A stretch of 64,000 nt of DNA from Heptranchias perlo (Eukaryota): contig NC_090340.1 of assembly GCF_035084215.1 (NCBI RefSeq), forward strand, positions 2,790,001-2,854,000, read 5' to 3'. A program made the translations under genes and the position numbers. Shown one piece after another: positions 1 to 48,206 of this stretch. The notes beneath the pieces were generated by a model. It was not told the origin of the DNA. It ran no database searches and was given only the letters and a program-made list of their open reading frames with translations. Position 1 is the stretch's first letter. The number at the start of each line of letters is the position of its first letter.

Positions 1-2452
1 TCAACAAGACATCCCAACTCCTGCATTCAATGTTCTGACCAATGAAACCAAGCATGCTGAATGCCTTCTTCACCACCCTATCCACCTGTGACTCCACTTT
101 CAAGGAGCTATGAATCTGTACTCCGAGATCTCTTTGTTCTATAACTCTCCCCAACGCCCTACCATTAACGGAGTAGGTCCTGGCCCGATTCGATCTACCA
201 AAATGCATCACCTCACATTTATCTAAATTAAACTCCATCTGCCATTCATCGGCCCACTGGCCCAATTTATCAAGATCCCGCTGCAATCCCAGATAACCCT
301 CCTCACTGTCCACAATGCCACCAATCTTGGTGTCATCCGCAAACTTACTAACCATGCCTCCTAAATTCTCATCCAAATCATTAATATAAATAACAAATAA
401 CAGCGGACCCAGCACCGATCCCTGAGGCACACCGCTGGAAACAGGCATCCAGTTTGAAAAACAACCCTCGACAACCACCCTCTGTCTTCTGTCGTCAAGC
501 CAATTTTGTATCCAATTGGCTACCTCACCTTGGATCCCATGAGATTTAACCTTATGTAACAACCTACCATGCGGTACCTTGTCAAATGCTTTGCTGAAGT
601 CCATGTAGACCACGTCTACTGCACAGCCCTCATCTATCTTCTTGGTTACCCCTTCAAAAAACTCAATCAAATTCGTGAGACATGATTTTCCTCTCACAAA
701 ACCATGCTGACTGTTCCTAATTAGTCCCTGCCTCTCCAAATGCCTGTAGATTCTATCCCTCAGAATACCCTCTAACAACTTACCCACTACAGATGTCAGG
801 CTCACTGGTCTGTAGTTCCCAGGCTTTTCCCTGCCGCCCTTCTTAAACAAAGGCACAACATTTGCTACCCTCCAATCTTCAGGCACCTCACCTGTAGCGG
901 TGGATGATTCAAATATCTCTGCTAGGGGACCCGCAATTTCCTCCCTAACCTCCCATAACGTCCTGGGATACATTTCATCAGGTCCCGGAGATTTATCTAC
1001 CTTGATGCGCGTTAAGACTTCCAGCACCTCCCTCTCTGTAATATGTACACTCCTCAAGACATCACTATTTATTTCCCCAAGTTCCCTAACATCCATGCCT
1101 TTCTCAACCGTAAATACCGATGTGAAATATTCATTCAGGATCTCACCCATCTCTTGTGGTTCCGCACATAGATGACCTTGTTGATCCTTAAGAGGCCCTA
1201 CTCTCTCCCTAGTTACCCTTTTGCCCTTTATGTATTTGTAGAATCTCTTTGGATTCACCTTTGCCTGATCTGCCAAAGCAATCTCATATCCCCTTTTTGC
1301 CCTCCTGATTTCTCTCTTAACTCTACTCCGGCAATCTCTATACTCTTCAAGGGATCCACTTGATCCCAGCTGCCTATGCATGTCATATGCCTCCTTCTTA
1401 TTTTTGACTAGTGCCTCAATCTCCCGAGTCATCCAAGGTTCCCTACTTCTACCAGCCTTGCCCTTCACTTTATAAGGAATGTGCTTACACTGAACCCTGG
1501 TTAACACACTTTTGAAAGCCTCCCACTTACCAGACGTCCCTTTGCCTGCCAACAGACTCTCCCAATCAACTTCTGAAAGTTCCTGTCTAATAGCATCAAA
1601 ATTGGCCTTTCCCCAATTTAGAATTTTAACTTTTGGGCCAGACCTATCCTTCTCCATAGCTATCTTAAAACTAATGGAATTATGATCACTGGTCCCAAAG
1701 TGATCCCTCACTAACACTTCTGTCACCTGCCCTTCCTTATTTCCCAAGAGGAGGTCAAGTTTTGCCCCCTCTCTAGTCGGGCCATCCACATACTGAATGA
1801 GAAATTCCTCCTGAATACACTCAACAAATTTCTCTCCATCCAAGCCCCTAATGCTATGGCTGTCCCAGTCAATGTTGGGAAAGTTAAAGTCCCCTACTAT
1901 TACCACCCTATTTTTCTTGCAGCTGTCTGTAATCTCCTTACATATTTGCTCCTCAATTTCCCGTTGACTATTTGGGGGTCTGTAGTACAATCCTATCAAA
2001 GTGATCTCTCCCTTCTTATTTTTCAGTTCTACCCATATGGACTCAGTGGGCGAACCCTCGGATATATCCCCTCTCACTACTGCCGTGATGTTCTCCCTAA
2101 TCAAGAACGCAACTCCCCCTCCTCTCTTACCTCCTGCTCTATCTTTCCTATAGCATCTGTACCCTGGAACATTGAGCTGCCAGTCCTGCCCCTCCCTTAG
2201 CCATGTTTCAGTAATAGCTATAACATCCCAGTCCCATGTACCCATCCATGCCCTGAGTTCATCTGCTTTGCCCATCAGACTTCTTGCATTGAAATAAATG
2301 CAGTTTAATCTAGTCTTCCCTTGGTCTTTGCCCTGCTTTCTCAGACCATCTGTCCGGTCATGTTCTGTACACTCTCCCTTACTGCCTTTTGTTTCTGTCA
2401 CCACTTTATTTCCCACTGACTTCCTGCATCGGTTCCCATCCCCCTGCCACAT
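1..2452 (-). CDS. LINE ORF2, AP-endonuclease/reverse transcriptase (partial, runs off the window edge)
   Basis: ATG at 2452-2450 reads MWQGDGN...NCIYFNARSL...VIAITETWL. The SKFADD RT motif near 343 is in the same frame. The ORF track lists no minus-strand ORF here, consistent with an unbroken frame open to the edge. Confidence 0.88.
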   Translation of the reverse strand, partial: MWQGDGNRCRKSVGNKVVTETKGSKGECTEHDRTDGLRKQGKDQGKTRLNCIYFNARSLMGKADELRAWMGTWDWDVIAITETWLREGQDWQLNVPGYRCYRKDRAGGKRGGGVAFLIRENITAVVRGDISEGSPTESIWVELKNKKGEITLIGLYYRPPNSQREIEEQICKEITDSCKKNRVVIVGDFNFPNIDWDSHSIRGLDGEKFVECIQEEFLIQYVDGPTREGAKLDLLLGNKEGQVTEVLVRDHFGTSDHNSISFKIAMEKDRSGPKVKILNWGKANFDAIRQELSEVDWESLLAGKGTSGKWEAFKSVLTRVQCKHIPYKVKGKAGRSREPWMTREIEALVKNKKEAYDMHRQLGSSGSLEEYRDCRSRVKREIRRAKRGYEIALADQAKVNPKRFYKYIKGKRVTRERVGPLKDQQGHLCAEPQEMGEILNEYFTSVFTVEKGMDVRELGEINSDVLRSVHITEREVLEVLTRIKVDKSPGPDEMYPRTLWEVREEIAGPLAEIFESSTATGEVPEDWRVANVVPLFKKGGREKPGNYRPVSLTSVVGKLLEGILRDRIYRHLERQGLIRNSQHGFVRGKSCLTNLIEFFEGVTKKIDEGCAVDVVYMDFSKAFDKVPHGRLLHKVKSHGIQGEVANWIQNWLDDRRQRVVVEGCFSNWMPVSSGVPQGSVLGPLLFVIYINDLDENLGGMVSKFADDTKIGGIVDSEEGYLGLQRDLDKLGQWADEWQMEFNLDKCEVMHFGRSNRARTYSVNGRALGRVIEQRDLGVQIHSSLKVESQVDRVVKKAFSMLGFIGQNIECRSWDVLL

Positions 2453-3399
2453 TAGTTTAAACCCTCCCCAACAGCACTAGCAAACACTCCCCCTAGGACA
2501 TTGGTTCCAGTCCTGCCCAGATGCAGACCGTCCAAATTGTACTGGTCCCACCTCCCCCAGAACCGGTTCCAATGGCCCAGGAATTTGAATCCCTCCCTCT
2601 TGCACCATCTCTCAAGCCACGTATTCATCTTAGCTATCCTGTCATTCCTACTCTGACTAGCCCGTGGCACTGGTAGCAATCCTGAGATTACTACCTTTGA
2701 GGTCCTACTCTTTAGTTTAACTCCTAACTCCCTAAATTCAGCTTGTAGGACCTCATCCTGTTTTTTACCTATATCGTTGGTGCCTATATGCACCACGACA
2801 ACTGGCTGTTCACCCTCCCCCTCCAGAATGTCCTGCAGCCGCTCCGAGACATCCTTGACCCTTGCACCAGGGAGGCAACATACCATCCTGGAGTCTCGGT
2901 TGCGTCCGCAGAAACGCCTGTCTATTCCCCTTACAATCGAGTCCCCTATCACTATAGCTCTGCCACTCTTTTTCCTGCCCTCCTGTGCAGCAGAGCCAGC
3001 CACGGTGCCATGAACCTGGCCACTGCCACCTTCCCCTGGTGAGCCATCTCCGCCAACAGTATCCAAAACGGTATACCTGTTTTGGAGGGAGATGACCGCA
3101 GGGGACCCCTGCACTGCCTTCCTACTCTTCCTCTGTCTGTTGGTCACCCATTCACTATCTCCCTCAGTAATTTTTATCTGCGGTGTGACCAACTCACTGA
3201 ACGTGCTATCCACGACTTTCTCAGCATCGCGGATGCTCCAAAGTGAGTCCATCCGCAGCTCCAGAGCCGTCAAGCGGTCAAACAATAGCTGCAGCTGGAC
3301 ACACTTCCCGCAGGTGAAGGAATCAGGGATACAGGAAGGAGCCCTGAATTCCCACATCCCACAAGAGGAACATGACACGGCGCTGGGATCTCCTGCCAT
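2452..3399 (-). CDS. CR1 ORF1p: N-terminal Cys-rich zinc finger, coiled coil and SGNH/GDSL-type esterase domain
   Basis: 315 aa. CxxC...CxxC, heptad LLFDRLTALELRMDSL, and esterase blocks VIGDSIV, PGA, HIGTND and DGLH. Confidence 0.92.
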   Translation of the reverse strand: MAGDPSAVSCSSCGMWEFRAPSCIPDSFTCGKCVQLQLLFDRLTALELRMDSLWSIRDAEKVVDSTFSELVTPQIKITEGDSEWVTNRQRKSRKAVQGSPAVISLQNRYTVLDTVGGDGSPGEGGSGQVHGTVAGSAAQEGRKKSGRAIVIGDSIVRGIDRRFCGRNRDSRMVCCLPGARVKDVSERLQDILEGEGEQPVVVVHIGTNDIGKKQDEVLQAEFRELGVKLKSRTSKVVISGLLPVPRASQSRNDRIAKMNTWLERWCKREGFKFLGHWNRFWGRWDQYNLDGLHLGRTGTNVLGGVFASAVGEGLN

Positions 3400-12850: not shown

Positions 12851-15043
12851 GGGGCAGAAATCGCTCAGGAAATAATCTCAACAGAGCACTCCATTGTTAA
12901 TGGCGAAATGGAGGAGCGCTTCTGGCCAAACTGTTCCAGTACAGATACAACAGTGGCATGTACCCGACAAAATGTGTAAAACTGCCCAGGTACGTCCTGT
13001 CCACCAAAACCAGGACAAATCCAATCCAGCCAATTACCGCCCCATCAGTCTACTCTCAATCATCTGCAAAGTGATGGAAGGTGTCGTCGACAGTGCTAAC
13101 AAGCGGCAGTTACTTACCAATAACCTGCTCACCGATGCTCAGTTTGTGTTCTGACAGGACCTCGCAGCTCCAGACCTCATTACAGCCTTGGTCAAAACAT
13201 GGAAAAAAGAGCTGAATTCCAGAGGTGAGGTGAGAGTGATTGCCCTTGACAGCAAGGCAGCATTTGGCCGGGCGTGGCACCAAGGAGCCCCAGTAAAATT
13301 GAGGTCAATGGGAATCAGGGGAAAAACTCTCCAGTGGCTGGAGACATACCTAGCACAAAGGAAGATGGTAGCGGTTGCTGAAGGCCAATCATCTCTGCCC
13401 CAGGATATTGCTGCAGGAGTTCCTCAGGGTGGTGTCCGAGGCTCAACCATCATCAGCAGCTTCATCAATGACCTTCCCTCCAACATAAGGTCAGAAATGG
13501 GGATGTTTGCTGATGATTGCACAGTGTTCAGTATCATTCACAACCCCTCAGATAATGAAGCAGTCCGTGCCCGCATGCAGCAAGACCTGGACAACATCCA
13601 GGCTTGGGCTGATAAGTGGCAAGTAATATTCGCGCCAGACAGGTGCCAGACAATGAACATCTCCAAAAAGAGAGAGTCTAACCACCTCTCCTTGACATTC
13701 AACATCATTACCATAACTGAATCCCCCACGATCAACATCCTGAGGCTCACCATTGACCAGAAACCGAACTGCACCAGCCACATTCGTACTGTGGCTACAA
13801 GAGCAGGTCAGAGGCTGGGTATTCTGCGGCGAGTGACTCATCTCCTGACTTCTCAAACCCTTTCAACCATCGACAACGCACGAGTCTGGAGGGTGATGGA
13901 ATACTCTCCACTTTCCTGGATGGGTGCAGCTCCAACAGCAGTCAAGAAGCTCAACTCCAACCAAGACAAAGCAGCCCACTTGATTGGTAGCCCATCCAAC
14001 ATCCTAAACATTCACTCCCTTCACCACCGGCGCACTGTGGCTGAAGTGTGTACCATCCATAACAGGATGCACTGCAGCAAGTCGCCAAGGCTTCTTCAAC
14101 AGCACCTCCCAAACCCGCGACTTCTACCACCTAGAAGGATAAGGGCAACAGGCACATGGGAACAACACCACCTGCACGTTCCCCTCCAAGAATTGGAAAT
14201 ATATCGCCATTCCTTCATCTTCGCTGGGTCAAAATCCTGAAACTCCCTTCCTAACAGCATTGTGGGATAACCTTCACCACAGGGACTGCAGCGGTTCAAG
14301 AAGGCGGTTCACCACTACCTTCTCAAGGGCAATTAGGGATGGGCAATAAACGCTGGCATTGCCAGCGACTCTCACATCCCATGAATGAATTAAAATAAAG
14401 TTCCGACGTTCGCACATGCGCAATGAAAGGTGGAAATCCGGAACTTGCTCCTCCTGGTTTGTTAGCTATGACAGCTTCGAAATAAAGGCATATCCTACGC
14501 TGCAATCAGAGAAATCATTGAAAAAGTGCAAAGTTACGTATCTGCCCAGCTGGACAGTAACTTATTATGCCACCTAACAGTGAAGCTTAAAAATACAGGT
14601 CTAAACTGGGTTTTACAGCGTGGTAAGTCTTAATGATTGCCAACCAACTCAAAATTAACTTTTAAAAATATTTAAAATTAAAGATTTATTGTTTTAGTTT
14701 TCCATTCTATCTCTTTTATTTCGTTCAATTATTTCTTACCCTCCCTTTTTTCGCCGACAATAACTGTTTTTACATTGATTTTAATGTTGTACCTTAATGA
14801 TCCAAGCCTGCAGAGATCGTTAATGCAGCGTGTCAAAAATGCTGCGATCTGATTGGTCTAGGGGAGAGATCGATCCTCTAGCTTTTCCAAGATCCTTGCT
14901 TGGCTTGAATTGAAACTGGACTCTTCTACGCTTCCGATTCGAGGAAGTGCATGATGAAAAGGCCGTCGGTAAGTTAGTGGGTTAGTATAAAGCTATGCAG
15001 TGGCGATCTGTGTTGGTTCCCGCTCGCAGCAATTTTCTGCCCC
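12851..15043. mobile_element. Non-autonomous DNA transposon with GGGGCAGAAA terminal inverted repeats, interrupted by a LINE
   Basis: GGGGCAGAAA at 12851-12860 and TTTCTGCCCC at 15034-15043. The flanking triplets (TAT/AAT) are not an exact TSD. Confidence 0.5.
12922..14399 (+). mobile_element. 5'-truncated CR1/jockey-group LINE (family B)
   Basis: NPANYRPISLLS, GVPQG, MFADD, WQVIFAPDRCQ; ends ATCCCATGAATGAATTAAAA. Confidence 0.9.
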
Positions 15044-17166: not shown

Positions 17167-18753
17167 GATGGCTTACATCCTAGGGTCTTGAGGGAAGTGG
17201 CAGTAGGGATTGTGGATGCTTTGGTAATAATTTTCCAAAATTCTCTGGACTCGGCAAAGGTCCCGGCAGATTGGAAAACTGCTAATGTAACACCCTTATT
17301 TAAAAAGGGTAGTAGGCAGAAGGCTGGAAATTATAGAATGGTTAGCCTAACATCTGTGGTGGGTAAAATTTTGGAGTCTATTATTAAGGAGACTGTAGCA
17401 GAACATTTGGATCAACATAATTTAATAGGACAAAGTCAGCATGGCTTTACGAAGGGGAAGTCATGTCTTACAAATTTGCTTGAGTTCTTTGAGGACATAA
17501 CGTACAGGGTGGATAAAGGGGAACCAGTGGACGTAGTGTATTTAGACTTCCAGAAGGCATTCGACAAGGTGCCACATAAAAGATTATTGCTCAAGTTAAA
17601 GAATCACTGGATTGGGGGTAATATTCTGGCATGGGTGGAGGATTGGTTATCTAACAGGAAGCAGAGAGTTGGGATAAATGGTTCATTCTCGGACTGGCAA
17701 CCAGTAGCCAGTGGTGTTCCGCAGTTGTCGGTGCTGGGTCCCCAACTCTTTACAATCTATATTAACAATTTGGAGGAGGGGACCGAGTGTAACATATCAA
17801 AGTTTGCAGATGATACAAAGATGGGAGGGAAAGTGGAGAGTGAGGAGGACATAAAAAACCTACGGTGGATATAGACAGGCTGGGTGAGAGGGCGGAGATT
17901 TGGCAGATGCAATACAATATTGGAAAATGTGAGGTTATGCACTTTGGCACGAAAAATCAGAGAGCAAGTTATTATCTTAAAGGCGAGAAACTGGAAAGTA
18001 CTGCAGTACAAAGGGATCTGGGGGTCTGAGTGCAAGAAAATCAAAAAGTTAGTATGCAGGTGCAGCAGGTGATCAAGAAGGCCAACGGAATGTTGGCTTT
18101 TATTGCTAGGGGGATAGAATATAAAAACAGGGAGGTATTGCTGCAGTTATATAAGGTATTGGTGAGACCGCACCTGGAATACTGCATACAGTTTTGGTGT
18201 CCATACTTAAGAAAAGACATACTTGCTCTCGAGGCAGTACAAAGAAGGTTCACTCGGTTAATCCCGGGGATTAGGGGGTGGACATATGAGTTGAGGATGA
18301 GCAGATTGGGACTCTACTCATTGGAGTTCAGAAGAATGAGAGGCGATCTTATTGAAACATATAAGATTGTGAAGGGCCTTGATCGGGTGGATGCGTTAAG
18401 GATGTTCCCAAGGATGGGTGAAACTAGAACTAGGGGGCATAATCTTACAATAAGGGGCTGCTCTTTCAAAACTGAGATGAGGAGAAACTTCTTCACTCAG
18501 AGGATAGTAGGTCTGTGGAATTTTCTGCCCCAGGAAGCTGTGGAAGCTACATCATTGAATAAATTTAAAACAGAAATAGACAGTTTCCCAGAAGTAAAGG
18601 GAATTAGGGGTTACGGGGAGCGGGCAGGAAATTGGACATGAATTTAGATTTGATGTTAGGATCAGATCGACCATGATCTTATTGAATGGCGGAGCAGGCT
18701 CGAGGGGCCGATTGGCCTACTCCTTTTACTATTTCTTATGTTCTTATGTTCTT
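17167..18753 (+). mobile_element. 5'-truncated CR1, same subfamily as 39066-42018
   Basis: ORFs 17188-17874 and 18030-18641 are near-identical to the 832-aa ORF; (TTCTTATG)n tail. Confidence 0.93.
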
Positions 18754-24664: not shown

Positions 24665-24719
24665 ATGTTTATAGGCGATGCACTTCAGTTCATATGGGTC
24701 CTGGGGATTACGTGCACAG
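24665..24719 (+). CDS. Exon 1: signal peptide MFIGDALQFIWVLGITCT
   Basis: Hydrophobic leader, donor ACAG|GTATTT, 118-bp intron to the V exon. Confidence 0.8.
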
Positions 24720-27700
24720 GTATTTTTTATATTTTTTTTCTATCCCATCCTCTCCGCGCTCTTTCTCAGTCCATAGTTTAACTCGTGCATTCATGTTTCG
24801 CATCTTATTTATAATTATGGTTTGTGTTTTCTGACAGTTACTATTGACACTCAGTTCCCAGTCGACCAAGCTCCTGAAACCATGACCGCGCTGGTAGGTT
24901 CAAACATCACCTTCTATTGCACATACCCCATTTTCCAAGATAACTCAGATGTCAATGTTTACTGGTGGAAACTTGGCGAAAGCAACTTTCTGCAAACTGC
25001 CTCCGAAAGCAGGAATAGATTTCTCCTTTTTAAACAAGGGGGAGCCTCCTTTCATCTTCTGAATATCAGTGCGCGGGACTCTGGGGTCTATTATTGCGGA
25101 GTGAGAATCCTGAGAGGCAGGATTGTAAATGGAACGGGTTCGACGATCAAAGTCTCCGGTAAGTGACACCGTGGACGACAAAGTAACCTCAAATGTCAGA
25201 TATTTCAAAATAAATATTAGTGCTGGATATTTTGTCAAAGATACTGGGACAATGTTCAACTTGCCGCCCATCTGCGTAACTGTAACTTTGGGCGATGGTG
25301 TAAAACGGGCGATATTGAATTAGCCGCCCATTATAAACAACACGTTATTTTCCTAACCATTGATGCCAGTGGAAGAGAAAATCTGGCGTGGTGTATATAG
25401 GTCGGCCAATTTCTAAATCTTAACATAAATAGCTAAAATTACTTCGCGTTGTCGATCTGCCGCCTGTTATAGGAACCGCCTCACGTTTCAATACCCGCTG
25501 GCTGATACTGAAAGCCAATGTTACGCCCGCGGCAAGTTGATAATGTACACCTTTATTTTAAAATAAACATATACATGCCTATGTTGTAAAAGACACACAC
25601 AGTGGAATGTTTTACAAACGCTGAGCGTGAACTGGCTAATATCCGGAGCAGTCACTCGTTGCTTTACATGCTGAAAATTCTTCCTTTTTCTTTTACCGAA
25701 ACCATCACTGATTGCGTTTAATATTCTTTATGGAAACGTACAGAAGGGACATTTTTATTTCACACATCTGGGAACAAGTACACTGCAATTAATTCAAAAT
25801 TCTTCAAGTTCCGAAATGGTCTGACAAAATTATTTTGTACGTCCTAAGTGCAGATCAAAGTTGTGCCTAATGTAACCTGCGCCGCCGCAGTTCTGCTTTA
25901 ACATTTTACCTCCAGTCGTCAAACTGTAGCCCGAAAATACAAAATTTAGATGATGTTAATTTATTTGTTGATGTTTTCTCAAACATTGTCAGTTCACACG
26001 GTCAAATAAACAGACTTTATTTGACCCCACACAGGAAACAAAATATTCTCCAATATAACATGTGGTGGACACCTACATAAAACTATTCACTCTCTCGAAA
26101 CATACAAGTGCTCCAAGTTGTAATAGCTGATGCTTCCCTCCCTCCATCACCAATCTGCAGCCGATAGCCTAAACCAGGTGACATTGGAGAATGATGGATC
26201 AGCTCCGGCGATGACGAACGCAAACAAACACCTGGCGCCGAAATAATATATCACCCAGAAACACATTTCCATCCAACCCTTCATTGGATTGGACTTAATA
26301 GCACCTGCAGGCAGATGTTGGATTTTCAGGCATAGATAGCTCCCCACACAGGAGTGACTCTTGTCAGTTTCCAAGCTGAAAGAAAAGGGTCCGTTATGTG
26401 AAGAAGGCACTAATTGTGTTTGTACATTGACCCAAAACGGTCCAAAAAACCTTATGACTTTTGGGAATGGCCTGCGATCACTCTTTGCCTTCTTACATTG
26501 CAACGCATTTGCTGTTTTATAGTGAAGATATTTTATACATTAAAATGCAACATATTTGTTATTTTATAATGCAACATGTTCACTTTTATATACTGTAACA
26601 TAATTGCTATTTTATTCCTCAATATTTTGGCTATTTTATAAGGCAACATAATTGCTATTAAATACTGTAACATATTAGTTATTTTATACCGCAACATATA
26701 GGATATTTGACAATGCAGCATATTCGCTATTTTATATTGTAACATATTTGCGATTATATATTGAAATATATTAGCTATTTTATAATGCAGCATATTTTCT
26801 AGCTTAAACTGCAACATGTTGGCTACTTTATACTACAACATATTTGCTATTATGTACTGAAACAAATTTGCAATTTTATACTGCAACATGTTGGCTATTT
26901 TATAATGGAGCATATTTGCAATTTCATACTGCAGCATATTTGTTATTTTATAATGCAGCCCCTTTGCAATTTTATACTGTATCATATTTGATATTTGATA
27001 TGATTCACATATTTATTATTTTAATCTGTAGCATTTTTTTGCCATTTTAGATTGTAAACGTTATTATTTAATACTACAGAATATATAGTATATGAAACAT
27101 GTTGCAACACATTTACAATTTTATACTAAAACATATATACTATTTTATACTGCGACAGATTGAAGATTTATTTTATATATATTGTAACAGACGGATAATG
27201 TAACATGTTTTTAACGTGGACGATATTTATTAGTTCATAATTTCACACATTTATAATTTATATTGTAACAGATTTGGTATTTCTTCAGATACATGTGAAA
27301 TGTGATTCGTACTTGAAAATTCAACAAAATGTTAATTTTGAAAGTTATAACGGATTTATAACAACTGGATTGTTGACGATACCATCAAATTATAGTAATA
27401 CAATATACAAGGGGAGTTTAAACAATCATTTATGTCAATTAATATTGATATCAATTCATGTTATCCAGTTGAAGTTCCTCGAACTTAAACGAGACTGCCC
27501 TCCCAATGAGCAGAAATGAGACACATTCTAAATATTCTTTTTTGAAACCGTTCCACAGTTCCGCCAACGCCGCTGAGGATTTTCTCCAAAGTATCAGAAT
27601 CGAACTCCTCTGCTCTGAATCTCGTGTGTAAAACGGACAACTTTTACCCGGATGCTCTCTCCCTCACTTGGTATAAAGATGGGATTGAGATTGTGATCGG

Positions 27701-28480
27701 CATAGAGACGACTACAACATTGAACATCGACGGACTGTATGAAGTTTCCAGCTTGCTGAAGGAGACACAGTCTATCCGAAGCGGGGCTGTTTATACTTGT
27801 CAAGTATCCCACCTCACGCTGCCTGCTCCAGCTAATGTGACCTTCATTATCCCGATTTCTAACATAGGTAAGGTGCCGGCATCCTTACAAACACAATGAA
27901 CTGGTGTTAAAATAATTTTTCGTTTACGCTGCAGGCTTAGCGTCGGCTGGAATAATTTAGCTTAACACCGGAACAATATCTATCGCGTAAATCTAGAGTC
28001 AGGAGCCCACTACGGAGAAACAGAGTGAGAGAAGGCAATCTCACAGTTCTGGTCCAAGCCCATGTCAGCTTGATTGTTCGGAGTTCTAACGCGGCTAAAA
28101 TACCAACGTTGTACCAAATAACATAATTTACGGATGGCCTGTCATATTTACTTTCTCTGAAGGACAAATTTAACGCACTATTAAAATAACTTCACTGACA
28201 CTTTTAGCTTAAGAACTTCACGGTGCTGTAAAAAAATACATAATCTCTCTACTGAATGGTTAGCATGAGTTTAAGGAATACAATGGGGTAGATTTTCTAT
28301 TTGGCGCCCGATCGTAAAAGTCGCCCGTTATATAAACAACACAATATTCATTTCTGTTTTTGTATATTCCTAGTTTCCCTTGACAATTCATTTATGGTTG
28401 TTCGGTTTGTATTGAGCGTATTGGTCGTTTTGATGCTGACGATAATCATTGTGGATCATTTTTGGATCAACTCCTTTTAA
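24665..28480 (+). CDS. Spliced IgSF type I membrane receptor, leader-V(J)-C1-TM, 263 aa: join(24665..24719,24838..25158,27559..27867,28374..28480)
   Basis: All three introns are GT-AG and phase 1. The joined frame is open (792 nt including TAA) and each exon is one domain. Exact orthology (SIRP, NKp30, B7H6 or antigen-receptor-like) is not determined. Confidence 0.88.
24838..25158 (+). CDS. Exon 2: Ig V-set domain with a germline-joined J-like G strand
   Basis: Acceptor TTTTCTGACAG; GSNITFYC...VYWW...RF...DSGVYYC...NGTGSTIKVS; donor CCG|GTAAGT. Confidence 0.93.
25282..25445. mobile_element. MITE-like element in intron 2
   Basis: AACTTTGGGCGATGGTGTAAAACGGGCGATAT...CTAAAATTAC. Confidence 0.7.
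26061..26317. promoter_or_regulatory. Candidate intronic enhancer (RUNX site and four E-boxes)
   Basis: TGTGGT 26061, CAGGTG 26175, CACCTG 26229, CACCTG 26302, CAGATG 26312. Motif evidence only. Confidence 0.3.
26508..27160. repeat. Degenerate AT-rich 24-bp minisatellite (consensus about TGCTATTTTATACTGCAACATATT)
   Basis: 24-nt periodicity, echoed in the 8-aa repeats (ANMLQYKI) of spurious ORF 26533-26817. Confidence 0.9.
27559..27867 (+). CDS. Exon 3: Ig C1-set domain
   Basis: Acceptor TTCCACAG; LVCKTDNFYPDALSLTWYKDG...GLYEVSSLL...YTCQVSHLTL; donor ATAG|GTAAGG. Confidence 0.93.
28374..28480 (+). CDS. Exon 4: short stalk, transmembrane helix with Arg, short tail and stop
   Basis: Acceptor TATTCCTAG; VSLDNSFMVVRFVLSVLVVLMLTIIIVDHFWINSF*; donor AAAG|GTAAGA follows at 28483. 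Confidence 0.82.
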
Positions 28481-28575
28481 AGGTAAGACATCCATTTATC
28501 ACTGTTGGGCGATAGGTTAACGACAGGGCACAAAGCGAACGTCAACAGAAAAGAATGAAAAACAATTCCACGATC

Positions 28576-28700
28576 ATTTTAACTTTGCGGGATAGTATAA
28601 AATGGACGATATGGAATTGGCCGCTTATTATATTTCTGGTGCATTACTGGCAGATCCGATATCGCCCATTTTACACATTGCCAAAAGTTAAAATTACCCC
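28576..28700. mobile_element. Palindromic MITE-like element
   Basis: ATTTTAACTTTG...TAAAATGGACGATATGG pairs with CCGATATCGCCCATTTTA...CAAAAGTTAAAATTACCCC. Confidence 0.78.
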
Positions 28701-35827: not shown

Positions 35828-36420
35828 GGTATACGTGAATTTGCTGTTGGTACCAGCACAACAAGGACAAAAGCTAATCGGCAGCCCATTTTACACTCTG
35901 CCTAATTTTTCTTCTATTTGAAGTGAAAGGTTGATTGATGGTAACTTGTTTAGCCTTGCGACATATAATGAGATCAGTAGCCTTAGAGGGCTATTAATCT
36001 CGACAATTCAGACGGCGCGTCTTGAAGGGGGCTACCGCTGGGCACTTCAGTATGCAAATCGGTGTCCTAATATCATGAGTGACATTCTAAGTTGGAAGTA
36101 GCCCAACCATGAAGTCAACGGAGAAAAAGCGGGAAGAGTGGAAATGCGGCGGAGTGTAAAACGGGCGGAGTGTAAATGGGCTGTTGATTTACCTTTTGTG
36201 CTACACTCAAGACGAATTTATGCCTCATATTGTTTGAAGGCAGGCAACTGGTCACAGTGACAAGTGCGATCGTGTGTTAATACTATTTCAAATCATATAT
36301 TGCCACGCCAACTTGTGCAGTGTGTAGATAATGCATATACTCAAACAATTATTCGCTCATTTCTGCGCTGGAAAGTGTCTTCTTAAATATTTGGGAAATT
36401 ACTGAAAACTTGGCAGCTTG

Positions 36421-36580
36421 GGGGTAGTTTTAACTTTCACGGATAATGTAAAACGGGCGGAATCGGATGGGCCGCCCGTTACACACTCCGCCTGATTTTC
36501 TTTTCCATTGACTTAAACGGGACAGGTTTACAAATGGCGGCCCATCGAATACCGCCTATTTACAATAACTCAGAAAGTAC
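36421..36580. mobile_element. MITE-like element
   Basis: GGGGTAGTTTTAACTTTC...TGTAAAACGGGCGGAATCGGATGGGCCGCC pairs with GGCGGCCCATCGAATACCGCC. Confidence 0.75.
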
Positions 36581-37765
36581 AAAAAAAAACCTTTTCATCT
36601 CAAAGATAAGGTCTAATTGTTGGCGATTTGGCCTAATTATTACAATACGAATTTGTAAAGTTGAATCCATGTCTATGGTTGCAATCTTGTTACATCACCA
36701 GCTTCCGTTTACTGCAGTAGACGACAAGCCTTACTGAGCTATCCAAAAATTTCCCAATAATGTAAGCAATTGCTTTGTCTAATAGGACAGAGGTGTTGAT
36801 GCTTTTTTTTCCATTAATGCTTGAACAGATCACAATGTTCTAATTTTGTTTGAGGAGTATTGATCATATAATTTTCTCAAAATATAAACGTGAATTGAAA
36901 TTTGTCAAGGACTCTTTAATCACATTCCAGCTGAAACCGGAAGATCGAAATACGCTGTATTCCGATTAATGGACCACAACTCTAAAAAAGAATACTTTTT
37001 AAGAGAGTCGCAGCACAGTTCGCTCGCAATGTACGTTCTACTCTCAATCGAGAAAGTTGAGAAATCCATTGCTAAAATATCAACTCTCATGATAAAACAG
37101 TCGGAGACTGGATAGAACATTTTGATCTTCAAAGAATTAGAGTAGGTTCTTGGTTTTGGTTTTAATTTGAATTATACGGTCCGTTATAGATTGCAAGTTG
37201 CAGCATTCACGTTTATAGAAGTCTTGACTGCAGTCAATTTGTTGATTTTGCTAATACTATTAATTTGTTACTTTTGAAAAAATATTTATATATTTGGAAT
37301 ATATTCATGAAACTAAAGCTGCGCAAATTGTAATAGTTTTATTGCAATGAGTCCTGGGGTCGCTGTTTGTTTCAGGATGTTTTTCTGATGTTTCTAACGC
37401 TTGTATCTCACTCTGAAACCAAACGGAACGTTGCTGTATATTGTCACCCTTATACGCGCAGCCCAATTAATGGAGTTCGAACCAACAGTTTGGAATGAGG
37501 TGTGCGGAATATTTAAACCTACAAGCAAGGGAAGCAACAGCATGCACTTATAGCACTTTGAGGTCGGACACTCAGCTGGGAGCTGAACATTGCTGAAGGA
37601 ATGGGGTTGGGGGAGAGTCACGATTCAACAGATAGCTATTTATGAAGTTTTAAAGGTAGTGTAAAAACAGATGCAACTGATTTTGCAAAAGACCCTACCT
37701 AATCGCTTCTGACTGGAGGAAAGAGGCAGGGAACAGGTAACAAGACAGGATCAGAGAAACAGAGC

Positions 37766-37911: not shown

Positions 37912-39065
37912 AAAGGGCGCGGTCTGCCGAGTATGATGAAGAATAGGGTGCGTTTACCAATGAGTAATAGTGAGGGGCGACATAGAGTAGACATTTAACA
38001 TATTGCGCAGATCAACACCCACCATTAACACTTTCAGTTGTTCGTATATTGTGCGCTCAGGTAAGAACTATAAAAAATATTTGCATGCAGAAACCCAAAG
38101 GACTGACTAATTTAAAACAGCATCGTATTGTATAACACATCAAGAAACTCTAAACACTGGTCTCGATGTTACTGACTCTGATTGTTATGCTGGGGCATTT
38201 AACATTCTCTTTACCACTTGACGAAGACACAATCGCACCAACAAAGGTTGTCAGCTGAAACAACCTCGATTTTATGTTCAATCGCTTGGAAGTCTGGACG
38301 CTGCCGCTACAATTGCTGGACTGAAATTCTAGAACTGAAAGTTATATATTCTGGAGCAAACACCTGCATTATAAGGTACTAGCCAAACGGAATTTAAAAC
38401 GTCACTACTAAGGAAAAGCTAAAGTTTGATTCCAACAGAGTATAACATTGAAATTGATGGCAGTACTGATATATAAGATTCAAATGTCATATACAGCCCA
38501 GAGAAAGAGAAACCTTTTTAACAAATGCCACATTGTGGAACAAAAAGAACAATACAGTAATAAGATGATCCGGTAGACACCCCATGGGAATCCGAATCCG
38601 GCGGTTTCTACAATGGACGGTCGATCTTCAATGCCAGTTTTAAGCCTGGCAGCAATTTTTACACCCCGCCCGCTTTTATTTCCATTGACAACAGTGGAAA
38701 CGAAAATCCCAGGCTTGGTGTAAAACGGGCTGCCGATTACCAAGAGCCCATTTGGCGCAACTGGTCTAGAACCATAGACTTCTCTATTTGCCATGTCGTT
38801 ACAAATCTTTCAGTTTCAAGTACACACACTTCCACTGTTTTTTTCCGCAAAACGTAATGTTTGACATTTCGGTCCATTGAAGTACAGTTCCTGACCTATT
38901 TGCACACACTGCAAACCTGTCTATGTCCAACTGTAATGTTACAAATTACAAAGAATGTACAGCATTGAAACAGGCCATTCGGCCCATCAGGTAAATACCT
39001 GCGTTCATGCTTCACTTGAGCCTCATTCGCCTATCAACAAATCCTTCTATTCCCTTCTCTTCCTC

Positions 39066-42018
39066 ACAAATAACTACGTATGGGTATGATCTTGTGGCCA
39101 TTACAGAAACATGGCTGCAGGGTGACAACGACTGGGAATTAAATATGCCAGGGTATTTAACAATCAGGAAGGACAGGCAGGAAGGAAGGGGAGGTGGGGT
39201 GGCTATGTTAATAAAGGAAGGAATCACTGTAATACAGAGAAATGATATTGGGACAAAGCATCAAGATAATGAAACAGTTTGGGTGGAGATAAGGAATAAT
39301 AAGGGAAAAAAACATTAGTGGGCGTAGTATATAGGCCTCCTAATAGTTGCAACTCTGCTGGAAGAAGTATTAATCAGGAGATAGTCGGGGCATGTAATAA
39401 GGGAACAGCCATAATTATGGGGGATTTTAATTATCATATTAACTGGACAAATCAAATTGGGCAGAGCAGCCTTGAGGACGAGTTCATTGAGTGCATCAGG
39501 GATGGATTTCTTGAGCAGTATGTAACTGATCCTACAAGGGGGCAGGCAACCTTGGACCTGGTCCTGTGTAATGAGTCAGGATTAATTAATAATGTCCTAG
39601 TTAAGGATCCCCTTGGAACGAGCGACCACAACATGGTTGAATTCCATATCCAATTAGAGGGTGAGAAGGTTGATTCTCAAACAAGCGTACTGAGCTTGAA
39701 TAAAGGAGACTATGATGGTATGAGAGCGGAATTGATTAAAGTGGACTGGGAAAATAGATTAAAGGGTAAGACGGTACATGAGCAGTGGTGTTCATTTAGG
39801 GAGTTATTTTACAACTTTCAAAATAAATATATTCCACTGAGGAAAAAAGGGTGTAAAAGAAATGACAGCCACCCGTGGCTAAGTAAAGAAATCAAGGATA
39901 GTATCCGACTAAAAACAAGGACATATAAGGTAGCCAAACTTAGTGGGAAGATAGAAGATTGGGAATTCTTCAAAAGACAGCAAAAAGTAACTAAAGGATT
40001 GATTAAGAAAAGGAAGTTAGATTATGAAAAGAAATTAGCAAAAAATATAAAAACAGATAGCAAGAGTTTCTATAGTTATATAAAAAGAAAAAGGGTGGCT
40101 AAGGCAAACATAGGTCCCTTAGAGGATGAGACCGGGAAATTAATGGTGGGAAACATGGAGATGGCAAAAATGCTGAACAAATATTTTGTTTCAGTCTTTA
40201 CAGTAGAGGACACTAAGAATATCACAACACTGGACAAACAGGGGACTCTCGGGGGGGAGGAGCTAAATACGATTAAAATCACTCAAGAGATGGTACTCAG
40301 TAAAATAATGGGACTCAAGGCGGATAAATCCCCTGGACCTGATGGCTTCCATCCTAGGGTCTTGAGGGAAGTGGCAGTAGGGATTGTGGATGCTTTGGTG
40401 ATAGTTTTCCAAAATTCCCTGGACTCAGGAGAGGTCCCGGCAGATTGGAAAACTGCTAATGTAACACCGTTATTTAAAAAGGGTAGTAGGCAGAAGGCTG
40501 GAAATTATAGGCCAGTTAGCTTAACATCTGTGGTGGGTAAAATTTTGGAGTCTATTATTAAGGAGACAGTAACGGAACATTTAGATAAGCATAATTTAAT
40601 AGGACAAAGTCAGCATGGCTTTATGAAGGGGAAGTCATGTCTGACAAATTTGCTTGAGTTCTTCGAGGATATAACGTATAGGGTGGATAAAGGGGAACCA
40701 GTGGACGTAGTGTATTTAGACTTCCAGAAGGCATTCGACAAGGTGCCACATAAAAGATTATTACTTAAGATAAAAAATCACGGGATTGGGGGTAACATTC
40801 TGGCATGGGTGGAGGATTGGTTATCAAACAGGAAGCAGAGAGTTGGGATAAATGGTTCATTTTCGGACTGGCAACCAGTAACCAGTGGTGTTCCACAGGG
40901 GTCGGTGCTGGGTCCCCAACTCTTTACAATCTATATTAACGATTTGGAGGAGGGGACCGAGTGCAACATATCAAAATTTGCAGATGATACAAAGATGGGA
41001 GGGAAAGTAGAGAGTGAGGAGGACATAAAAAACCTGCAAGGGGATATAGACAGGCTGGGTGAGTGGGCGGAGATTTGGCAGATGCAATATAATATTGGAA
41101 AATGTGAGGTTATGCACTTTGGCAGGAAAAATCAGAGAGCAAGTTATTTTCTTAATGGCGAGAGACTGGAAAGTACTGCAGTACAAAGGGATCTGGGGGT
41201 CCTAGTGCAAGAAAATCAAAAAGTTGGTATGCAGGTGCAGCAGGTGATCAAGAAAGCCAACGGAATGTTGGCTTTTATTGCTCGGGGGATAGAATATAAA
41301 AACAAGGAGGTATTGCTGCAGTTATATAAGGTATTGGTGAGACCGCACCTGGAATACTGCATACAGTTTTGGTCTCCATACTTAAGAAAAGACATACTTG
41401 CTCTCGAGGCAGTACAAAGAAGGTTCACTCGGTTAATCCCGGGGATGAGGGGGCGGACATATGAGGAGAGGTTGAGTAGATTGGGACTCTACTCATTGGA
41501 GTTCAGAAGAATGAGAGGCGATCTTATTGAAACATATAAGATTGTGAAGGGTCTTGATCGGGTGGATGCGGTAAGGATGTTCCCAAAGATGGGTGAAACT
41601 AGAACTAGGGGGCATAATCTTAGAATAAGGGGCTGCTCTTTCAAAACTGAGATGAGGAGAAACTTCTTCACTCAGAGGGTGGTAGGTCTGTGGAATTTGC
41701 TGCCCCAGGAAGCTGTGGAAGCTACATCATTAGATAAATTTAAAACAGAAATAGACAGTTTCCTAGAAGTAAAGGGAATTAGGGGTTATGGGGAGCGGGC
41801 AGGAAATTGGACATGAAGCTGAGTTCGGATCGGTCAATGCCCTGTGGGTGGCGGAGAGGGCCCAGGGGCTATGTGGCCGGGTCCTGCTCCGACTTCTTGT
41901 GTTCTTTAGATTTGTGGTTGGGATCAGTTCAGCCATGATCTTGTTGAATGGCGGAGCAGGCTCGAGGGGCCGATTGGCCTACTCCTGCTCCAATTTCTTA
42001 TGTTCTTATGTTCTTATG
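39066..42018 (+). mobile_element. Young 5'-truncated CR1 with a nearly complete ORF2
   Basis: Starts inside the endonuclease (YDLVAITETWL), has one frameshift at about 39310 and a (TTCTTATG)n tail. Confidence 0.95.
39318..41816 (+). CDS. CR1 ORF2 endonuclease/reverse transcriptase, 832-aa open segment
   Basis: [47 protein letters not shown]. Confidence 0.9.
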   Translation: MGVVYRPPNSCNSAGRSINQEIVGACNKGTAIIMGDFNYHINWTNQIGQSSLEDEFIECIRDGFLEQYVTDPTRGQATLDLVLCNESGLINNVLVKDPLGTSDHNMVEFHIQLEGEKVDSQTSVLSLNKGDYDGMRAELIKVDWENRLKGKTVHEQWCSFRELFYNFQNKYIPLRKKGCKRNDSHPWLSKEIKDSIRLKTRTYKVAKLSGKIEDWEFFKRQQKVTKGLIKKRKLDYEKKLAKNIKTDSKSFYSYIKRKRVAKANIGPLEDETGKLMVGNMEMAKMLNKYFVSVFTVEDTKNITTLDKQGTLGGEELNTIKITQEMVLSKIMGLKADKSPGPDGFHPRVLREVAVGIVDALVIVFQNSLDSGEVPADWKTANVTPLFKKGSRQKAGNYRPVSLTSVVGKILESIIKETVTEHLDKHNLIGQSQHGFMKGKSCLTNLLEFFEDITYRVDKGEPVDVVYLDFQKAFDKVPHKRLLLKIKNHGIGGNILAWVEDWLSNRKQRVGINGSFSDWQPVTSGVPQGSVLGPQLFTIYINDLEEGTECNISKFADDTKMGGKVESEEDIKNLQGDIDRLGEWAEIWQMQYNIGKCEVMHFGRKNQRASYFLNGERLESTAVQRDLGVLVQENQKVGMQVQQVIKKANGMLAFIARGIEYKNKEVLLQLYKVLVRPHLEYCIQFWSPYLRKDILALEAVQRRFTRLIPGMRGRTYEERLSRLGLYSLEFRRMRGDLIETYKIVKGLDRVDAVRMFPKMGETRTRGHNLRIRGCSFKTEMRRNFFTQRVVGLWNLLPQEAVEATSLDKFKTEIDSFLEVKGIRGYGERAGNWT

Positions 42019-45135: not shown

Positions 45136-47179
45136 TGTATTGCATTCTTCCTCACAGTTTTAATGCATCTAATTTAGTAGTATCAGAAAACTTCAGTATC
45201 CTTCCTCTTGTGCCTATTAGGTCAACCGACTAGATTAATCTAAATTATATCGGCTAGGACACCAGAGATAAATCAACTTTTTGGTTTTATTATTGTTGAG
45301 AGAAAGGACATGCAAGGTTATACTAACACCTAACCAATCTTGGCGAGTTCTCAGCCGAGAATATTAAAGAATTACAGAATGTGATCCTATTTATACAGTC
45401 AGAGAAATAGTTGCTACACAACCTCCGATGACGTGTTCTGAACCCATCAACTCTGAGATTATTGTCATGTGATCTACCTGTAATATGCTACTACACCAGT
45501 AGATGTCAATGCTGCACCACATATACTCTATTCTCACGAGAACGTGGAGAATATTTAATTTCTGATCAGTAAAATGTAAGAAAATTTTGCAGGTTATAAA
45601 CATCACAGCTTTCCAGAATAACGTAAACGAGGAATTGTGCCACCAAACCAGCCATCATTCTTTACACAAACCTGTTGATACTTTTTAAATTGTCGTAAAC
45701 TGACAAATACCCTGCTTACGTTGCCTTGGCCTGCAGAAGGCAAACGACCTAATCTAAACCACGTGTTAGCCTCTTTCACACAAAATCATTCTCAAACTAC
45801 ACAGATATTAGCACTGACTTCTGTATTGTTAATCTATTTTTCCCTCATTTTTTCTCGCCAGATGCTGTACACTTTCTATTCCGTCATGTCTAAAGTCCAC
45901 CTGCGATACATTTTCATCTTTTCTTTAGTAATCCATACTAACTATCCCATGGCACCCTTTTACCTATGTCTAGCTGATAACCTAGTAACTTACACACTGT
46001 CCTACACCTATGTCCTAACTATTCATATGAATGGAGAAAAATAGGTATCTAGTAAAGGGCACACAACTGCCCACAACCCGCCATCCGAAAACAAAATCGA
46101 TCTAAGCCTCTTTGCTCTCTGTTCACTAGATATCGCTCTATTCACTTGGCTGCATGTGTTTTAATTTCACACCACGTATGTTTTGTAACAACTCGCTATT
46201 TGGCGTCCTATCATGCTCAGTCATTTTTAAATACCCAGTTAGAAACAATTTCCACCCATATGGACTCTGATTCTAAGATATCAGGCTTTATTTGTACATC
46301 ATACAGATCTTATTGGTGCATGTAACTGCGAAGACTGCCAATGCCATCGAAGACATAGGGTGTGGCACCCAAAGAATGTAATGTGAATCTATCTTCAGAG
46401 ATTTTAGAGATAAGATATTATACACCTCGGCCTCCATATTCAGATATATGAATGGACCAGTTTCGTAAATATGTTCAAAGCTCGTAAGATGGCGTTTAAA
46501 GATTTAAATCTATATTAAGAAGCTATCTGAACCTCACAGAATATTACCTCCAGGTTTTAATGGCGGATCAATATAAATAAAATGATACTGCAAGAAATAC
46601 AGCTTTATTTGTTTAACATTTAAGGGTAGGAAGGTGGGTCAAAGTAGAGATGTCGATTTAAAATAAGGAAATTGTTCAAGTTTTTACCGATCATCCTCCA
46701 ATAAGCAGCACATGTTTGCACAATTTCACTTTTAGTTCAAGTATTTTCACCAATGTTGAGATGCTGCATTAAGATTTCTGGGCATATTTAACACCCTGAT
46801 TGTTTTCTTACTTGGGGAAGGGGCGGGTGGGGGGTGCTCACTGGGGATCGAAATTACTGTTCTCTGGGGGATGGGCAGGTCATGTGAGAGGGGAGCAAAA
46901 GAATGAACAATCATATTTGCCCTTTGGGTACTGCGGGGTTGATGGGCTGAATATGGCATTCCCTTTCTTCGAACTTTCGCAAATGTATTATTATCCAAAG
47001 GGATAATTGAGCCAATATTAACATAATAATAGTCAAAAATCATGATTCGTGAAGGCGCAGAAGTTCGAATGATAAGTTAATAAGCTAACACATGTTCAGA
47101 TGAGTGAGGAAGTTGGTTGAGAACGTTGTGTACAAATGAGAACAGTGGCTGGAGTCGTACCAAGTACAAGATGGTAGAT

Positions 47180-48206
47180 GGTAGTGGTTGTTGGAGCCAA
47201 TCATCTCAGCCTCAGGACATTGCTGCAGGAGTTCCTCAGGACAGTGTCCTAGGCCCAACCATCTTCAGTTGCTTCATCAATGACCTTCCCTCCACAGTAA
47301 GGTCAGAAATGGGGACGTTCGCTGATGATTGCATAGTGTTCAGTTCCATTCGCAAACCCTCAGATATTGAAGCAGCCCGTGCCCGCCTGCAGCAAGACCT
47401 GGACAACATCCAGGCTTGGGCTCATAAGTGGCAAGTAACATTCGCGCCAGACAAGTGCCAGGCAATGACCATCTCCAACAAGAGAGAGTCTAGCCACCTC
47501 CCCTTGACATTCAACAGCATTACCATCACCGAATCCCCCACCATCAACTTACTGGGGGTTACCATTGACCAGAAACTTAACTGGACCAGCCACATAAATA
47601 CCGCGGCTACAAGAGCAGGTCAGAGGTTGGGTATTCTGCAGCGAGTGACTCACCTCCTGACTCCCCAAAGCATTTCCACCATCTACAAGGCACAAGTCAG
47701 GATTGTGATAGAATACTCTCCACTTGCCTGGATGAGTGCAGCTCCAACAACACTCAAGAAGCTTGACACCATCCAGGACAAAGCAGCCCGCTTGATTGGC
47801 ACCCCATTCACCAACCTAAACATTCACTCCCTTCACCACCAGCGCACCATGGCTGCAGTGTGCACCATCCACAGGATGCACTGCAGCAAATCGCCAAGGC
47901 TTCTTCGACAGCACCTGGGAAACCCTCGACCTCTACCACCCAGAAGGACAAGGGCAGCAGACACATGGGAACAACACCACCTACACGTTCCCTTCCAAGT
48001 CACAAACCATCTCGACTTGGAAATATATCGCCGTTCCTTCATCGTTGCTGTGTCAAAATCCTGGACCTCCCTTCCTAACAGCACTGTGGGAGAACGTTCA
48101 CCACAGCGGTTCAAGAAGGCGGCTCACCAGTACCTTTTCAAGGGCAATTAGGGATGGGCAATAAATGCCAGCGACGCCCAATTCCCATGAACGAGTTAAA
48201 AAAAAA
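47180..48206 (+). mobile_element. Family-B LINE, 3' 1 kb
   Basis: GVPQDSVLGP, FADD, WQVTFAPDKCQ; poly(A) end. Confidence 0.92.

Follow-up and report, generated by a model that had tools for sequence, protein, structure and literature searches.

An intact, non-rearranging V-C1 receptor gene in Heptranchias perlo, probably an activating member within a family of paired receptors in cartilaginous fishes

The combination of a VJ-type variable (V) domain, in which a joining (J)-like strand follows without rearrangement, with a C1-set domain is the signature of antigen receptors, and the non-rearranging SIRP, UrIg and UrIg2 are the main material for reconstructing the target of the RAG transposon. 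Here we describe an intact four-exon receptor gene with this combination at 24665-28480 on the forward strand of the window, the whole 64-kb stretch of Heptranchias perlo DNA that was analysed. It adds a new, unannotated member to an existing and essentially uncharacterised family of cartilaginous fishes in which one V domain, one C1 domain and a transmembrane (TM) segment follow one another (V-C1-TM). Probably it encodes an intact type I membrane receptor of the immunoglobulin (Ig) superfamily, which would serve as the activating partner in a paired activating/inhibitory set like SIRPbeta/SIRPalpha, NKp30 and the teleost NITRs.

Previous studies showed that SIRPs are non-rearranging receptors, in which a V domain with a J-like Gly-x-Gly strand is followed by true C1-set domains (PMC2785349). 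Members bearing immunoreceptor tyrosine-based inhibitory motifs (ITIMs) stand there beside short-tailed members with a basic TM residue, and the same two kinds of member are found in the shark family. A VPPT-type linker is likewise common to both. The shark family departs from SIRP in having a single C1 domain where SIRP has two, a shorter V domain without a C'' strand and, as its basic TM residue, an outer-end Arg where SIRP has a Lys, and it is confined to cartilaginous fishes as far as our searches reached. The V plus two C1 domains of the SIRP ectodomain were not seen at this locus, since tblastn with family proteins found no further Ig exon in the window.

UrIg and UrIg2, which also occur in sharks, share with the window gene a split leader, a single-exon VJ without recombination signal sequence (RSS) and C1-set domains (PMC12227049; PDB 9dmx). 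According to the UrIg2 paper, UrIg has three C-type domains and UrIg2 has 9-11 C domains (PMC12227049), whereas the window gene proceeds from a single C1 exon to the TM exon and thus falls short of a VJ exon with at least three C1-type domains. The V domains of UrIg and UrIg2 match the family profile weakly. Moreover, both are single genes, linked to the major histocompatibility complex (MHC; UrIg, class III) or to the IgH/TCRalpha-delta complex (UrIg2; TCR, T-cell receptor), and not a paired multigene family, and the V-C1-TM family is also present in Callorhinchus. In teleosts, the NITRs studied by the Litman and Yoder laboratories combine a J-like V domain with a second Ig domain, and form large, fast-evolving clusters of ITIM-bearing and charged-TM members. 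They follow the same working logic as the shark family, with a J-like V, a second Ig domain, and ITIM-bearing members set against charged-TM members; however, the second NITR domain is I/C2-like and not C1-set, and NITRs are not known outside bony fishes.

The window gene was read and translated exon by exon, and its open frame consists of 263 codons (18+1+106+1+102+1+34). All three introns are GT-AG introns of phase 1, and every junction codon is G/TT (Val). The four exons, the phase-1 introns and the open 263-residue protein given in an earlier note on this DNA were thus reproduced exactly, both in translation and at the splice sites. The four-exon structure is far beyond chance, because both Ig exons share 80-90% identity with proteins predicted in other sharks and because the GC content is 45% in the exons against 35% in the introns. 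In the last exon, the stalk contains no Cys, so that a disulfide-linked dimer is unlikely, and the short tail contains no signalling motif. A homodimer prediction for the V-C1 part of the Heterodontus francisci protein P0001 (XP_067905015; residues 168-380, two copies) gave a score of 0.00, which is evidence neither way. In protein comparison, P0001 continues with F-E-R for 10 further residues where the window gene reads F-stop. A consensus splice donor directly follows this stop, and the Heterodontus protein is longer by those 10 residues; it is therefore probable that the window gene has a split 3' untranslated region and that its relatives have their final coding bases in one more exon.

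Exon 2 matches the Pfam V-set domain (E value 4e-9, 37 bits against a cut-off of 26) and carries Cys27, Cys86, a WW pair at residues 42-43, the YYC motif and three N-glycosylation sequons. Its AlphaFold model (predicted local distance difference test, pLDDT, 89) is closest among solved structures to IgNAR V (Z 14.9), NCAM Ig1, CD79b, the light-chain V domain (VL), TCR V delta/beta and PD-1/PD-L1. The domain is short, with 59 residues from Cys to Cys and no C'' strand in the model. According to the missing strand, the short span and the mixed structural neighbours, the domain encoded by the exon is short, of V/I type, ends in a J-like G strand and is unlike a typical Ig/TCR V domain. Ten residues separate YYC from the strand NGTGSTIKVS, and all of these lie inside exon 2 without an RSS, as in VJ-type V domains. 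This FG loop, comparable to a third complementarity-determining region (CDR3), is the most variable stretch in an alignment of five sequences of the orthologue group (ILRG, NLGA, TLRS, TLEN and TLEH), while G98 and G100 of the following G-x-G motif are invariant in the V-only alignment and conserved in at least 90% of the family alignment, where NGTGS is the consensus. A scan of both strands of the whole 64 kb for RSS-like pairs of heptamer (at least 6/7 matches) and nonamer (at least 7/9), with a spacer of 12 or 23 +/-1, found none; a single isolated CACAGTG heptamer lies at 25598 in intron 2. The earlier note had the V exon running from DSGVYYC through a loop of 8-9 residues into NGTGSTIKVS with neither an RSS nor an intron in front of the J-type strand: the continuity and the lack of both interruptions were borne out, and the loop length needs correction to 10 residues.

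Exon 3 matches the Pfam C1-set domain (PF07654) with an E value of 9.6e-14 and 51.9 bits (cut-off 21). According to a previous study, the hallmarks of C1-set domains are F/Y-F/Y/H-P opening the BC loop, 13 residues from the Cys of strand B to the Trp of strand C, and x-V-x-H after the Cys of strand F (Hatherley 2009, PMC2785349). All three are present in exon 3, as FYP, a spacing of exactly 13 residues, and CQVSH. The neighbours of its predicted model (pLDDT 89) all belong to the C1-set and are tied at Z 13.6-14.7, including MHC II beta2/alpha2, the Ig light-chain constant domain, UrIg2 C3 (Z 14.3), IgNAR C1/C3, SIRPgamma d3 and the C domain of B7-H6. By sequence, the best single-domain PDB match of the C1 exon is the lambda constant domain (32.8 bits), and UrIg2 comes second, as it also does with the family profile. 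The Pfam match and the TM helix of exon 4 agree with the single C1 domain and subsequent TM exon that had been proposed.

All searches used single exons of the window gene or public relatives as queries. An exhaustive HMMER search with the V exon among 1.84 billion representative proteins gave 336 matches, 96 of them with E<=1e-10, and the top ones are complete V-C1-TM proteins from fishes including Heterodontus, Mustelus, Heptranchias, Carcharodon, Mobula, Scyliorhinus and Callorhinchus. Cluster look-ups and word-indexed searches placed members in sharks (Heterodontus, Heptranchias, Mustelus, Carcharodon, Cetorhinus, Scyliorhinus, Chiloscyllium, Hemiscyllium and Rhincodon), rays (Mobula, Hypanus, Hemitrygon, Pristis, Amblyraja, Leucoraja and Narcine) and the chimaera Callorhinchus. 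In the word-indexed protein searches, which are not exhaustive, the significant matches were all chondrichthyan except for a marginal one to a sea-urchin nephrin-like protein (E 4.6e-4). When grouped at 50% identity, the best 150 matches contain at least 60 clusters of the family, and several Heterodontus members share one chromosome-sized record (99.65 Mb). Family members also lie on records of 66.5 Mb in Heptranchias, 193.5 Mb in Carcharodon and 18.1 Mb in Callorhinchus. NCBI has given its members automatic names as different as SIRP-like (PTPNS1-like), tapasin-related-like, immunoglobulin lambda-1 light chain-like, NCR3LG1-like, CD276 homolog, 'SLA class II DQ beta-like' and 'M1-specific TCR beta-like', and such conflict is the mark of an uncurated family. 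The UrIg2 paper (PMC12227049) and a shark MHC paper cover UrIg, UrIg2, NCR3 and PRARP, and neither mentions SIRP in sharks or a shark family of VJ-C1-TM type. Chicken and other non-mammals have PRARP genes (cited in PMC10751288), which we count among the systems nearest to the shark family.

Closest to the window gene is the ITIM-type protein P0188 of Heptranchias itself, which is identical at 11 of 11 leader residues, 89.5% of the V domain and 85.3% of the C1 domain. Heterodontus P0001 shares 82% of the residues in V, 80% in C1, 72% in the leader and, across 25 residues, 72% in the TM exon. With 82-90% identity in V and 80-85% in C1 to these two proteins, together with the TM exon shared with P0001, the window gene falls within the chondrichthyan V-C1-TM family. 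The ITIM-type proteins P0003 (Mustelus) and P0189 (S. torazame) are about 67% identical to it. In the V tree, the window gene, P0001 and P0003 form one clade with a Shimodaira-Hasegawa-like approximate likelihood ratio (SH-aLRT) support of 96, and the C1 tree recovers the same grouping with a support of 89-92. The first 145 residues of P0001 resemble reverse-transcriptase open reading frames (ORFs) of long interspersed nuclear elements (LINEs) in the window, and its true start aligns with the ATG at 24665; this part of the public model is an annotation artefact and lies outside the receptor. A poorly described innate receptor family of cartilaginous fishes with VJ-C1 layout had been one of two readings offered for the locus, and it is this reading that was supported, by a chondrichthyan-wide V-C1-TM family with Arg-TM or ITIM ends. 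The gene is neither singular nor hidden, since orthologues are already predicted in public annotations.

A survey of the sequence beyond C1 revealed two kinds of end. In the Arg-type end, the TM exon reads (H/P)-R-F-(I/V)-L...L-T-I-I-I-x-(D/E)-H and is followed by 4-18 residues, and the TM motif R-F/S/L-I/V-L...(D/E/N)-H is found in the window gene, P0001, P0006, P0167, P0168, P0170, P0171, P0084, P0179, P0127 and P0065; the TM exon of P0001 is of the same RF(I/V)L...DHF type as in the window gene. The motif is conserved across sharks and in further members of the family. In the ITIM-type end, an uncharged, Gly/Cys-rich TM segment is followed by 70-150 residues with 1-4 ITIMs of LxYAxL type, as exemplified by the ITIM-like LTYAAF and TEYAEL in the tail of P0188. 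The two forms are interspersed throughout both the V and C1 trees, and both occur inside the orthologue group of the window gene. Such intermixing is classic for paired receptors, where activating forms have repeatedly emerged next to inhibitory relatives.

We read the window gene as an activating receptor because of the Arg at the outer end of its TM helix, its motif-free tail and its inhibitory relatives with a common ectodomain. The V domain would bind a ligand via its BC and FG (CDR1- and CDR3-like) loops, and the TM Arg would recruit an adaptor of the FcRgamma/CD3zeta/DAP12 type, which bears an immunoreceptor tyrosine-based activation motif (ITAM). In mammals, an outer-leaflet TM Arg makes the FcRgamma/CD3zeta type of contact. 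The receptor would then activate the cell, and the ITIM-bearing relatives with a nearly identical ectodomain would counterbalance it. What we infer for the window copy comprises its adaptor, its activating function, its ligand and its expression.

Several points weigh against this reading. A TM Arg alone is no proof of pairing with an ITAM adaptor, and tblastn with family proteins found no partner gene within the 64-kb window. No contig that exactly matches the window gene was found in three small runs of the same sample, which were guessed to be RNA and whose tissue of origin is unstated, and no protein in the searched collections was flagged as a product of the window. Finally, the profile scores of lambda, kappa, SIRPalpha and UrIg2 lie close together and do not set any one named family apart. 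As for the surroundings, neither a second family gene nor an ITIM tail exon was found in the window, where tblastn with 28 family proteins matched exons 2 and 3 only. Weak tblastn matches at 18125 and 41300 were rejected as further family exons, as they are LINE reverse-transcriptase ORFs. An apparent fossil ITIM exon at 36922-36987, matched by the tails of P0188/P0189 with 20.8 bits and an in-frame stop, was attributed to chance, as 16 of 31 shuffled or reversed controls scored as high, and the seemingly collinear tail matches at 36123 and 36474 fall in copies of a short repeat.

Table 1. Features of the Heptranchias perlo V-C1-TM gene (positions in the window; a slash marks an exon/intron boundary)
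Feature	Position	Strand	Description
Exon 1	24665..24719	+	Start codon and split leader MFIGDALQFIWVLGITCT, 18 codons + 1 nt; A at -3 of ATG
Intron 1 (leader intron)	24720..24837	+	118 nt, phase 1; CAG/GTATTT...GACAG/TT; donor CAG/GT at 24720
Exon 2	24838..25158	+	321 nt, 106 codons; V domain including its own J-like G strand
CDR3-like FG loop GVRILRGRIV	25098..25127	+	10 residues between Cys86 and Asn97
J-like strand NGTGSTIKVS, G-x-G bulge motif	25128..25157	+	Contiguous with V, no RSS
Intron 2	25159..27558	+	2400 nt, phase 1; CCG/GTAAGT...CACAG/TT; carries a short repeat and a 24-bp minisatellite
Exon 3	27559..27867	+	309 nt, 102 codons; one C1-set domain, VPPTPL linker at start
Intron 3	27868..28373	+	506 nt, phase 1; TAG/GTAAGG...CCTAG/TT
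Exon 4	28374..28480	+	SLDNSFMVVRFVLSVLVVLMLTIIIVDHFWINSF: short stalk, TM helix, 8-residue tail DHFWINSF; TAA at 28478-28480
TM helix	28391..28453	+	FMVVRFVLSVLVVLMLTIIIV; Arg codon 28403-28405 near outer end; Asp-His at inner end
Candidate splice donor AG/GTAAGA	28481..28488	+	Immediately 3' of the stop; donor at 28483, consensus match

With regard to kinship, the family might be the cartilaginous-fish homologue of SIRP, cut down to one C1 domain, with the window gene as a SIRPbeta-like activating member. This would refine the paired-receptor reading, and we hold it as a tentative possibility. A 40-member family profile was compared with PDB sequences and scored per stretch or domain. It gave 73.4 bits for lambda V-C, 70.0 for kappa V-C, 68.4 for SIRPalpha d1-d2, 58.8 for UrIg2 (part of V plus C1), about 50 for VH-CH1 (the heavy-chain V and first constant domains), and 49.5 for SIRPalpha d3 including the VPPT linker. 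The profile thus spans SIRPalpha d1-d2 (68 bits) and matches d3 again, while lambda (73 bits) and kappa (70) score equal or higher, so that by profile score the family seems about equally distant from light chains and SIRP. Only the per-domain scores are informative here, as the PDB lists from both the profile and the single sequences were dominated by multi-domain antibodies and I-set proteins, and in the ESM Atlas the kappa-like, tapasin-related, CD80 and SIRP clusters stood level at 0.95-0.96 without discrimination. SIRPs are likewise paired V(J-like)-C1 receptors (PMC2785349), SIRPgamma d3 is among the top structural neighbours of the C1 model (Z 13.6), and the most frequent NCBI names in the family are 'tyrosine-protein phosphatase non-receptor type substrate 1-like' and 'SIRP beta/gamma-like'. 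However, there is one C1 domain and not two, and SIRP V domains are outside the top 60 sequence matches and the top 50 structural matches of the V exon. The basic TM residue also differs, being an outer-leaflet Arg in the window gene and a Lys in SIRPbeta. In SIRPbeta, this TM Lys binds DAP12.

A divergent NCR3 (NKp30) family has reportedly been described in nurse shark by Kinlein and colleagues. That the V-C1-TM family is this NCR3 family, or overlaps it, with the C1 exon as an optional cassette, is unlikely. In NKp30, too, the V domain is germline-encoded and VJ-type, the TM segment carries an Arg and the tail is very short, and V-only isoforms exist among the genes of the shark family. Predicted isoforms of one gene differ by exact C1-exon skipping with an unchanged tail, which leaves an NKp30-like V-only receptor, both in Heterodontus (P0024 and P0032; isoforms X2/X4) and in Pristis (P0187 and P0044). 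The V-only Pristis isoform P0044 was automatically named 'natural cytotoxicity triggering receptor 3-like' and its V-C1 counterpart P0187 'SIRP-like'. In the window gene, the C1 exon (309 nt, phase 1-1) could be skipped with the frame kept. NKp30 itself has no C1 domain, whereas the window gene carries a C1 exon and its ectodomain is therefore not V-only; this difference may be one of splicing. Human NKp30 is absent among the listed sequence and structural neighbours of the V exon. Furthermore, the 2025 UrIg2 paper treats NCR3 as a V-only gene and contains no VJ-C1-TM family (PMC12227049). NCR3 was reported to be linked to the MHC, but P0006, a paralogue in the white shark, maps to a chromosome of 193.5 Mb, which, judged by size, would not be chromosome 19, where the white-shark MHC lies. 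Linkage of the V-C1-TM family to the MHC is doubtful, and its link to NKp30 is suggested only indirectly, via automatic naming and C1-skipping isoforms.

The window copy might also be silent or decaying, and the expressed gene might be only a paralogue that is about 94-95% identical to it, which we consider unlikely. A DNA run, likely of the source animal, covers the whole window gene without differences. It also contains contigs that match portions of exons 2 and 3 (24955-25054 and 27680-27770) at about 95% identity, and therefore a close paralogue exists in the genome. Among the three runs that may be RNA, run X5 yielded a 183-nt contig, which aligns to 25128-25158 and ends exactly at the predicted donor, continues with 55 unaligned letters, and then aligns to 27614-27709. 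Just as many nucleotides, 27559 to 27613, lie from the predicted acceptor to the point where the alignment resumes, and the 55 letters match them. Because it mismatches the window gene by about 6%, the contig is a spliced transcript of an approximately 94%-identical paralogue and not of the window copy, and it confirms the V-to-C1 junction for the family. Of the three splice junctions, this one was thus seen, in the paralogue, while an exact match to the window copy was not obtained from the three small runs. The sole spliced contig, the close paralogue, the isolated position of the window gene amid LINE and transposon debris, and its stop where the Heterodontus model reads 10 residues further would all fit a silent copy. 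However, the frame is open and all splice sites are canonical, the family-invariant Cys, Trp, YYC, GxG, FYP, VSH and TM Arg are all intact, and an end few residues past DHF is normal among activating members (P0168, P0170 and P0171); moreover, the RNA data are tiny and their tissue is unstated. In the paired-receptor reading, the transcribed paralogue (about 94-95% identical) may be the inhibitory partner.

It is improbable that the family, instead of or beside UrIg/UrIg2, is the closest living image of the pre-RAG receptor, that is, a membrane-bound VJ-C1-TM protein with a basic residue and ITAM-adaptor signalling like TCR chains, which would predate the holocephalan/elasmobranch split and be sister to Ig/TCR and not to SIRP. 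The earlier note had pointed to the resemblance of the gene to such an ancestor; the resemblance is one of layout, and the profile scores the family no closer to Ig/TCR than to SIRP. The family may be a SIRP homologue, NCR3 under another name, or a separate early branch beside Ig/TCR.

The second reading in the earlier note, in which the window gene would descend, already joined in the germline, from a rearranging antigen receptor (an Ig light or TCR chain) and have gained a TM exon later, can be set aside as very unlikely: shark lambda light chains are germline-joined (PMC12227049), several family members are automatically named 'immunoglobulin lambda-1 light chain-like' and the lambda constant domain is the top single-domain PDB sequence match of the C1 exon, but the 64-kb window holds neither an RSS nor a remnant of one, the V domain is short, lacks C'' and matches I-set, PD-L1 and IgNAR V domains as well as VL/TCR V domains with no preference for Ig/TCR V, a TM exon is present whereas light chains have none, and the family is ancient (holocephalans included) and diversified into ITIM and Arg-TM forms, which is the signature of innate paired receptors.

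Around and within the gene, the window is rich in repeats, and no flanking host gene was found within its 64 kb. The 24-bp minisatellite of intron 2 occupies 26499-27000 (and 27106-27151), with about 21 copies of the unit TGCAACATATTTGCTATTTTATAC at 69% matches, and it produces long spurious ORFs on both strands. A high-copy short repeat lies at 25283-25335, with a core of about GTAAAACGGGCG...GCCGCCC...TATAAACAAC, where the summed contig depth in the DNA run is near 2000 against 18 in the flanks. Further copies were recognised by eye at about 28300-28340, 28600-28640, 36110-36180 and 36450-36500, and the repeat is also present in the runs that may be RNA. It is probably an element like a short interspersed nuclear element or a miniature inverted-repeat transposable element, dispersed in introns. 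An uninterrupted ORF of 832 residues at 39318-41816 (+), together with 39007-39318, encodes an Exo_endo_phos_2 endonuclease and a reverse transcriptase, and may be a recently active LINE. The window is filled with many decayed LINE copies, among them those at 13188-14240, 17188-18641, 47117-48151 and 59068-61405. An ORF of 315 residues at 2452-3399 (-) contains a GDSL-lipase/OSK-like esterase domain of the kind that certain CR1/L2-type LINEs carry in ORF1. Finally, a fragment of a Harbinger-type DDE_Tnp_4 transposase at 55864-56271 (+) adjoins a 228-residue ORF without Pfam match at 57809-58495 (-), and this pair (55864-58495) is probably a decayed PIF/Harbinger element.

The value of the single window gene is modest, as it adds one more, probably activating, member. 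Behind it stands a whole VJ-C1-TM family of cartilaginous fishes with activating and inhibitory ends, which is inconsistently labelled in databases, and automatic names such as 'tapasin-related', 'lambda light chain-like' and 'SLA class II beta-like' are untrustworthy for V-C1-TM loci. The family makes it testable whether the layout of V, C1 and a TM segment with a basic residue is older than rearrangement, or a side branch of SIRP type.

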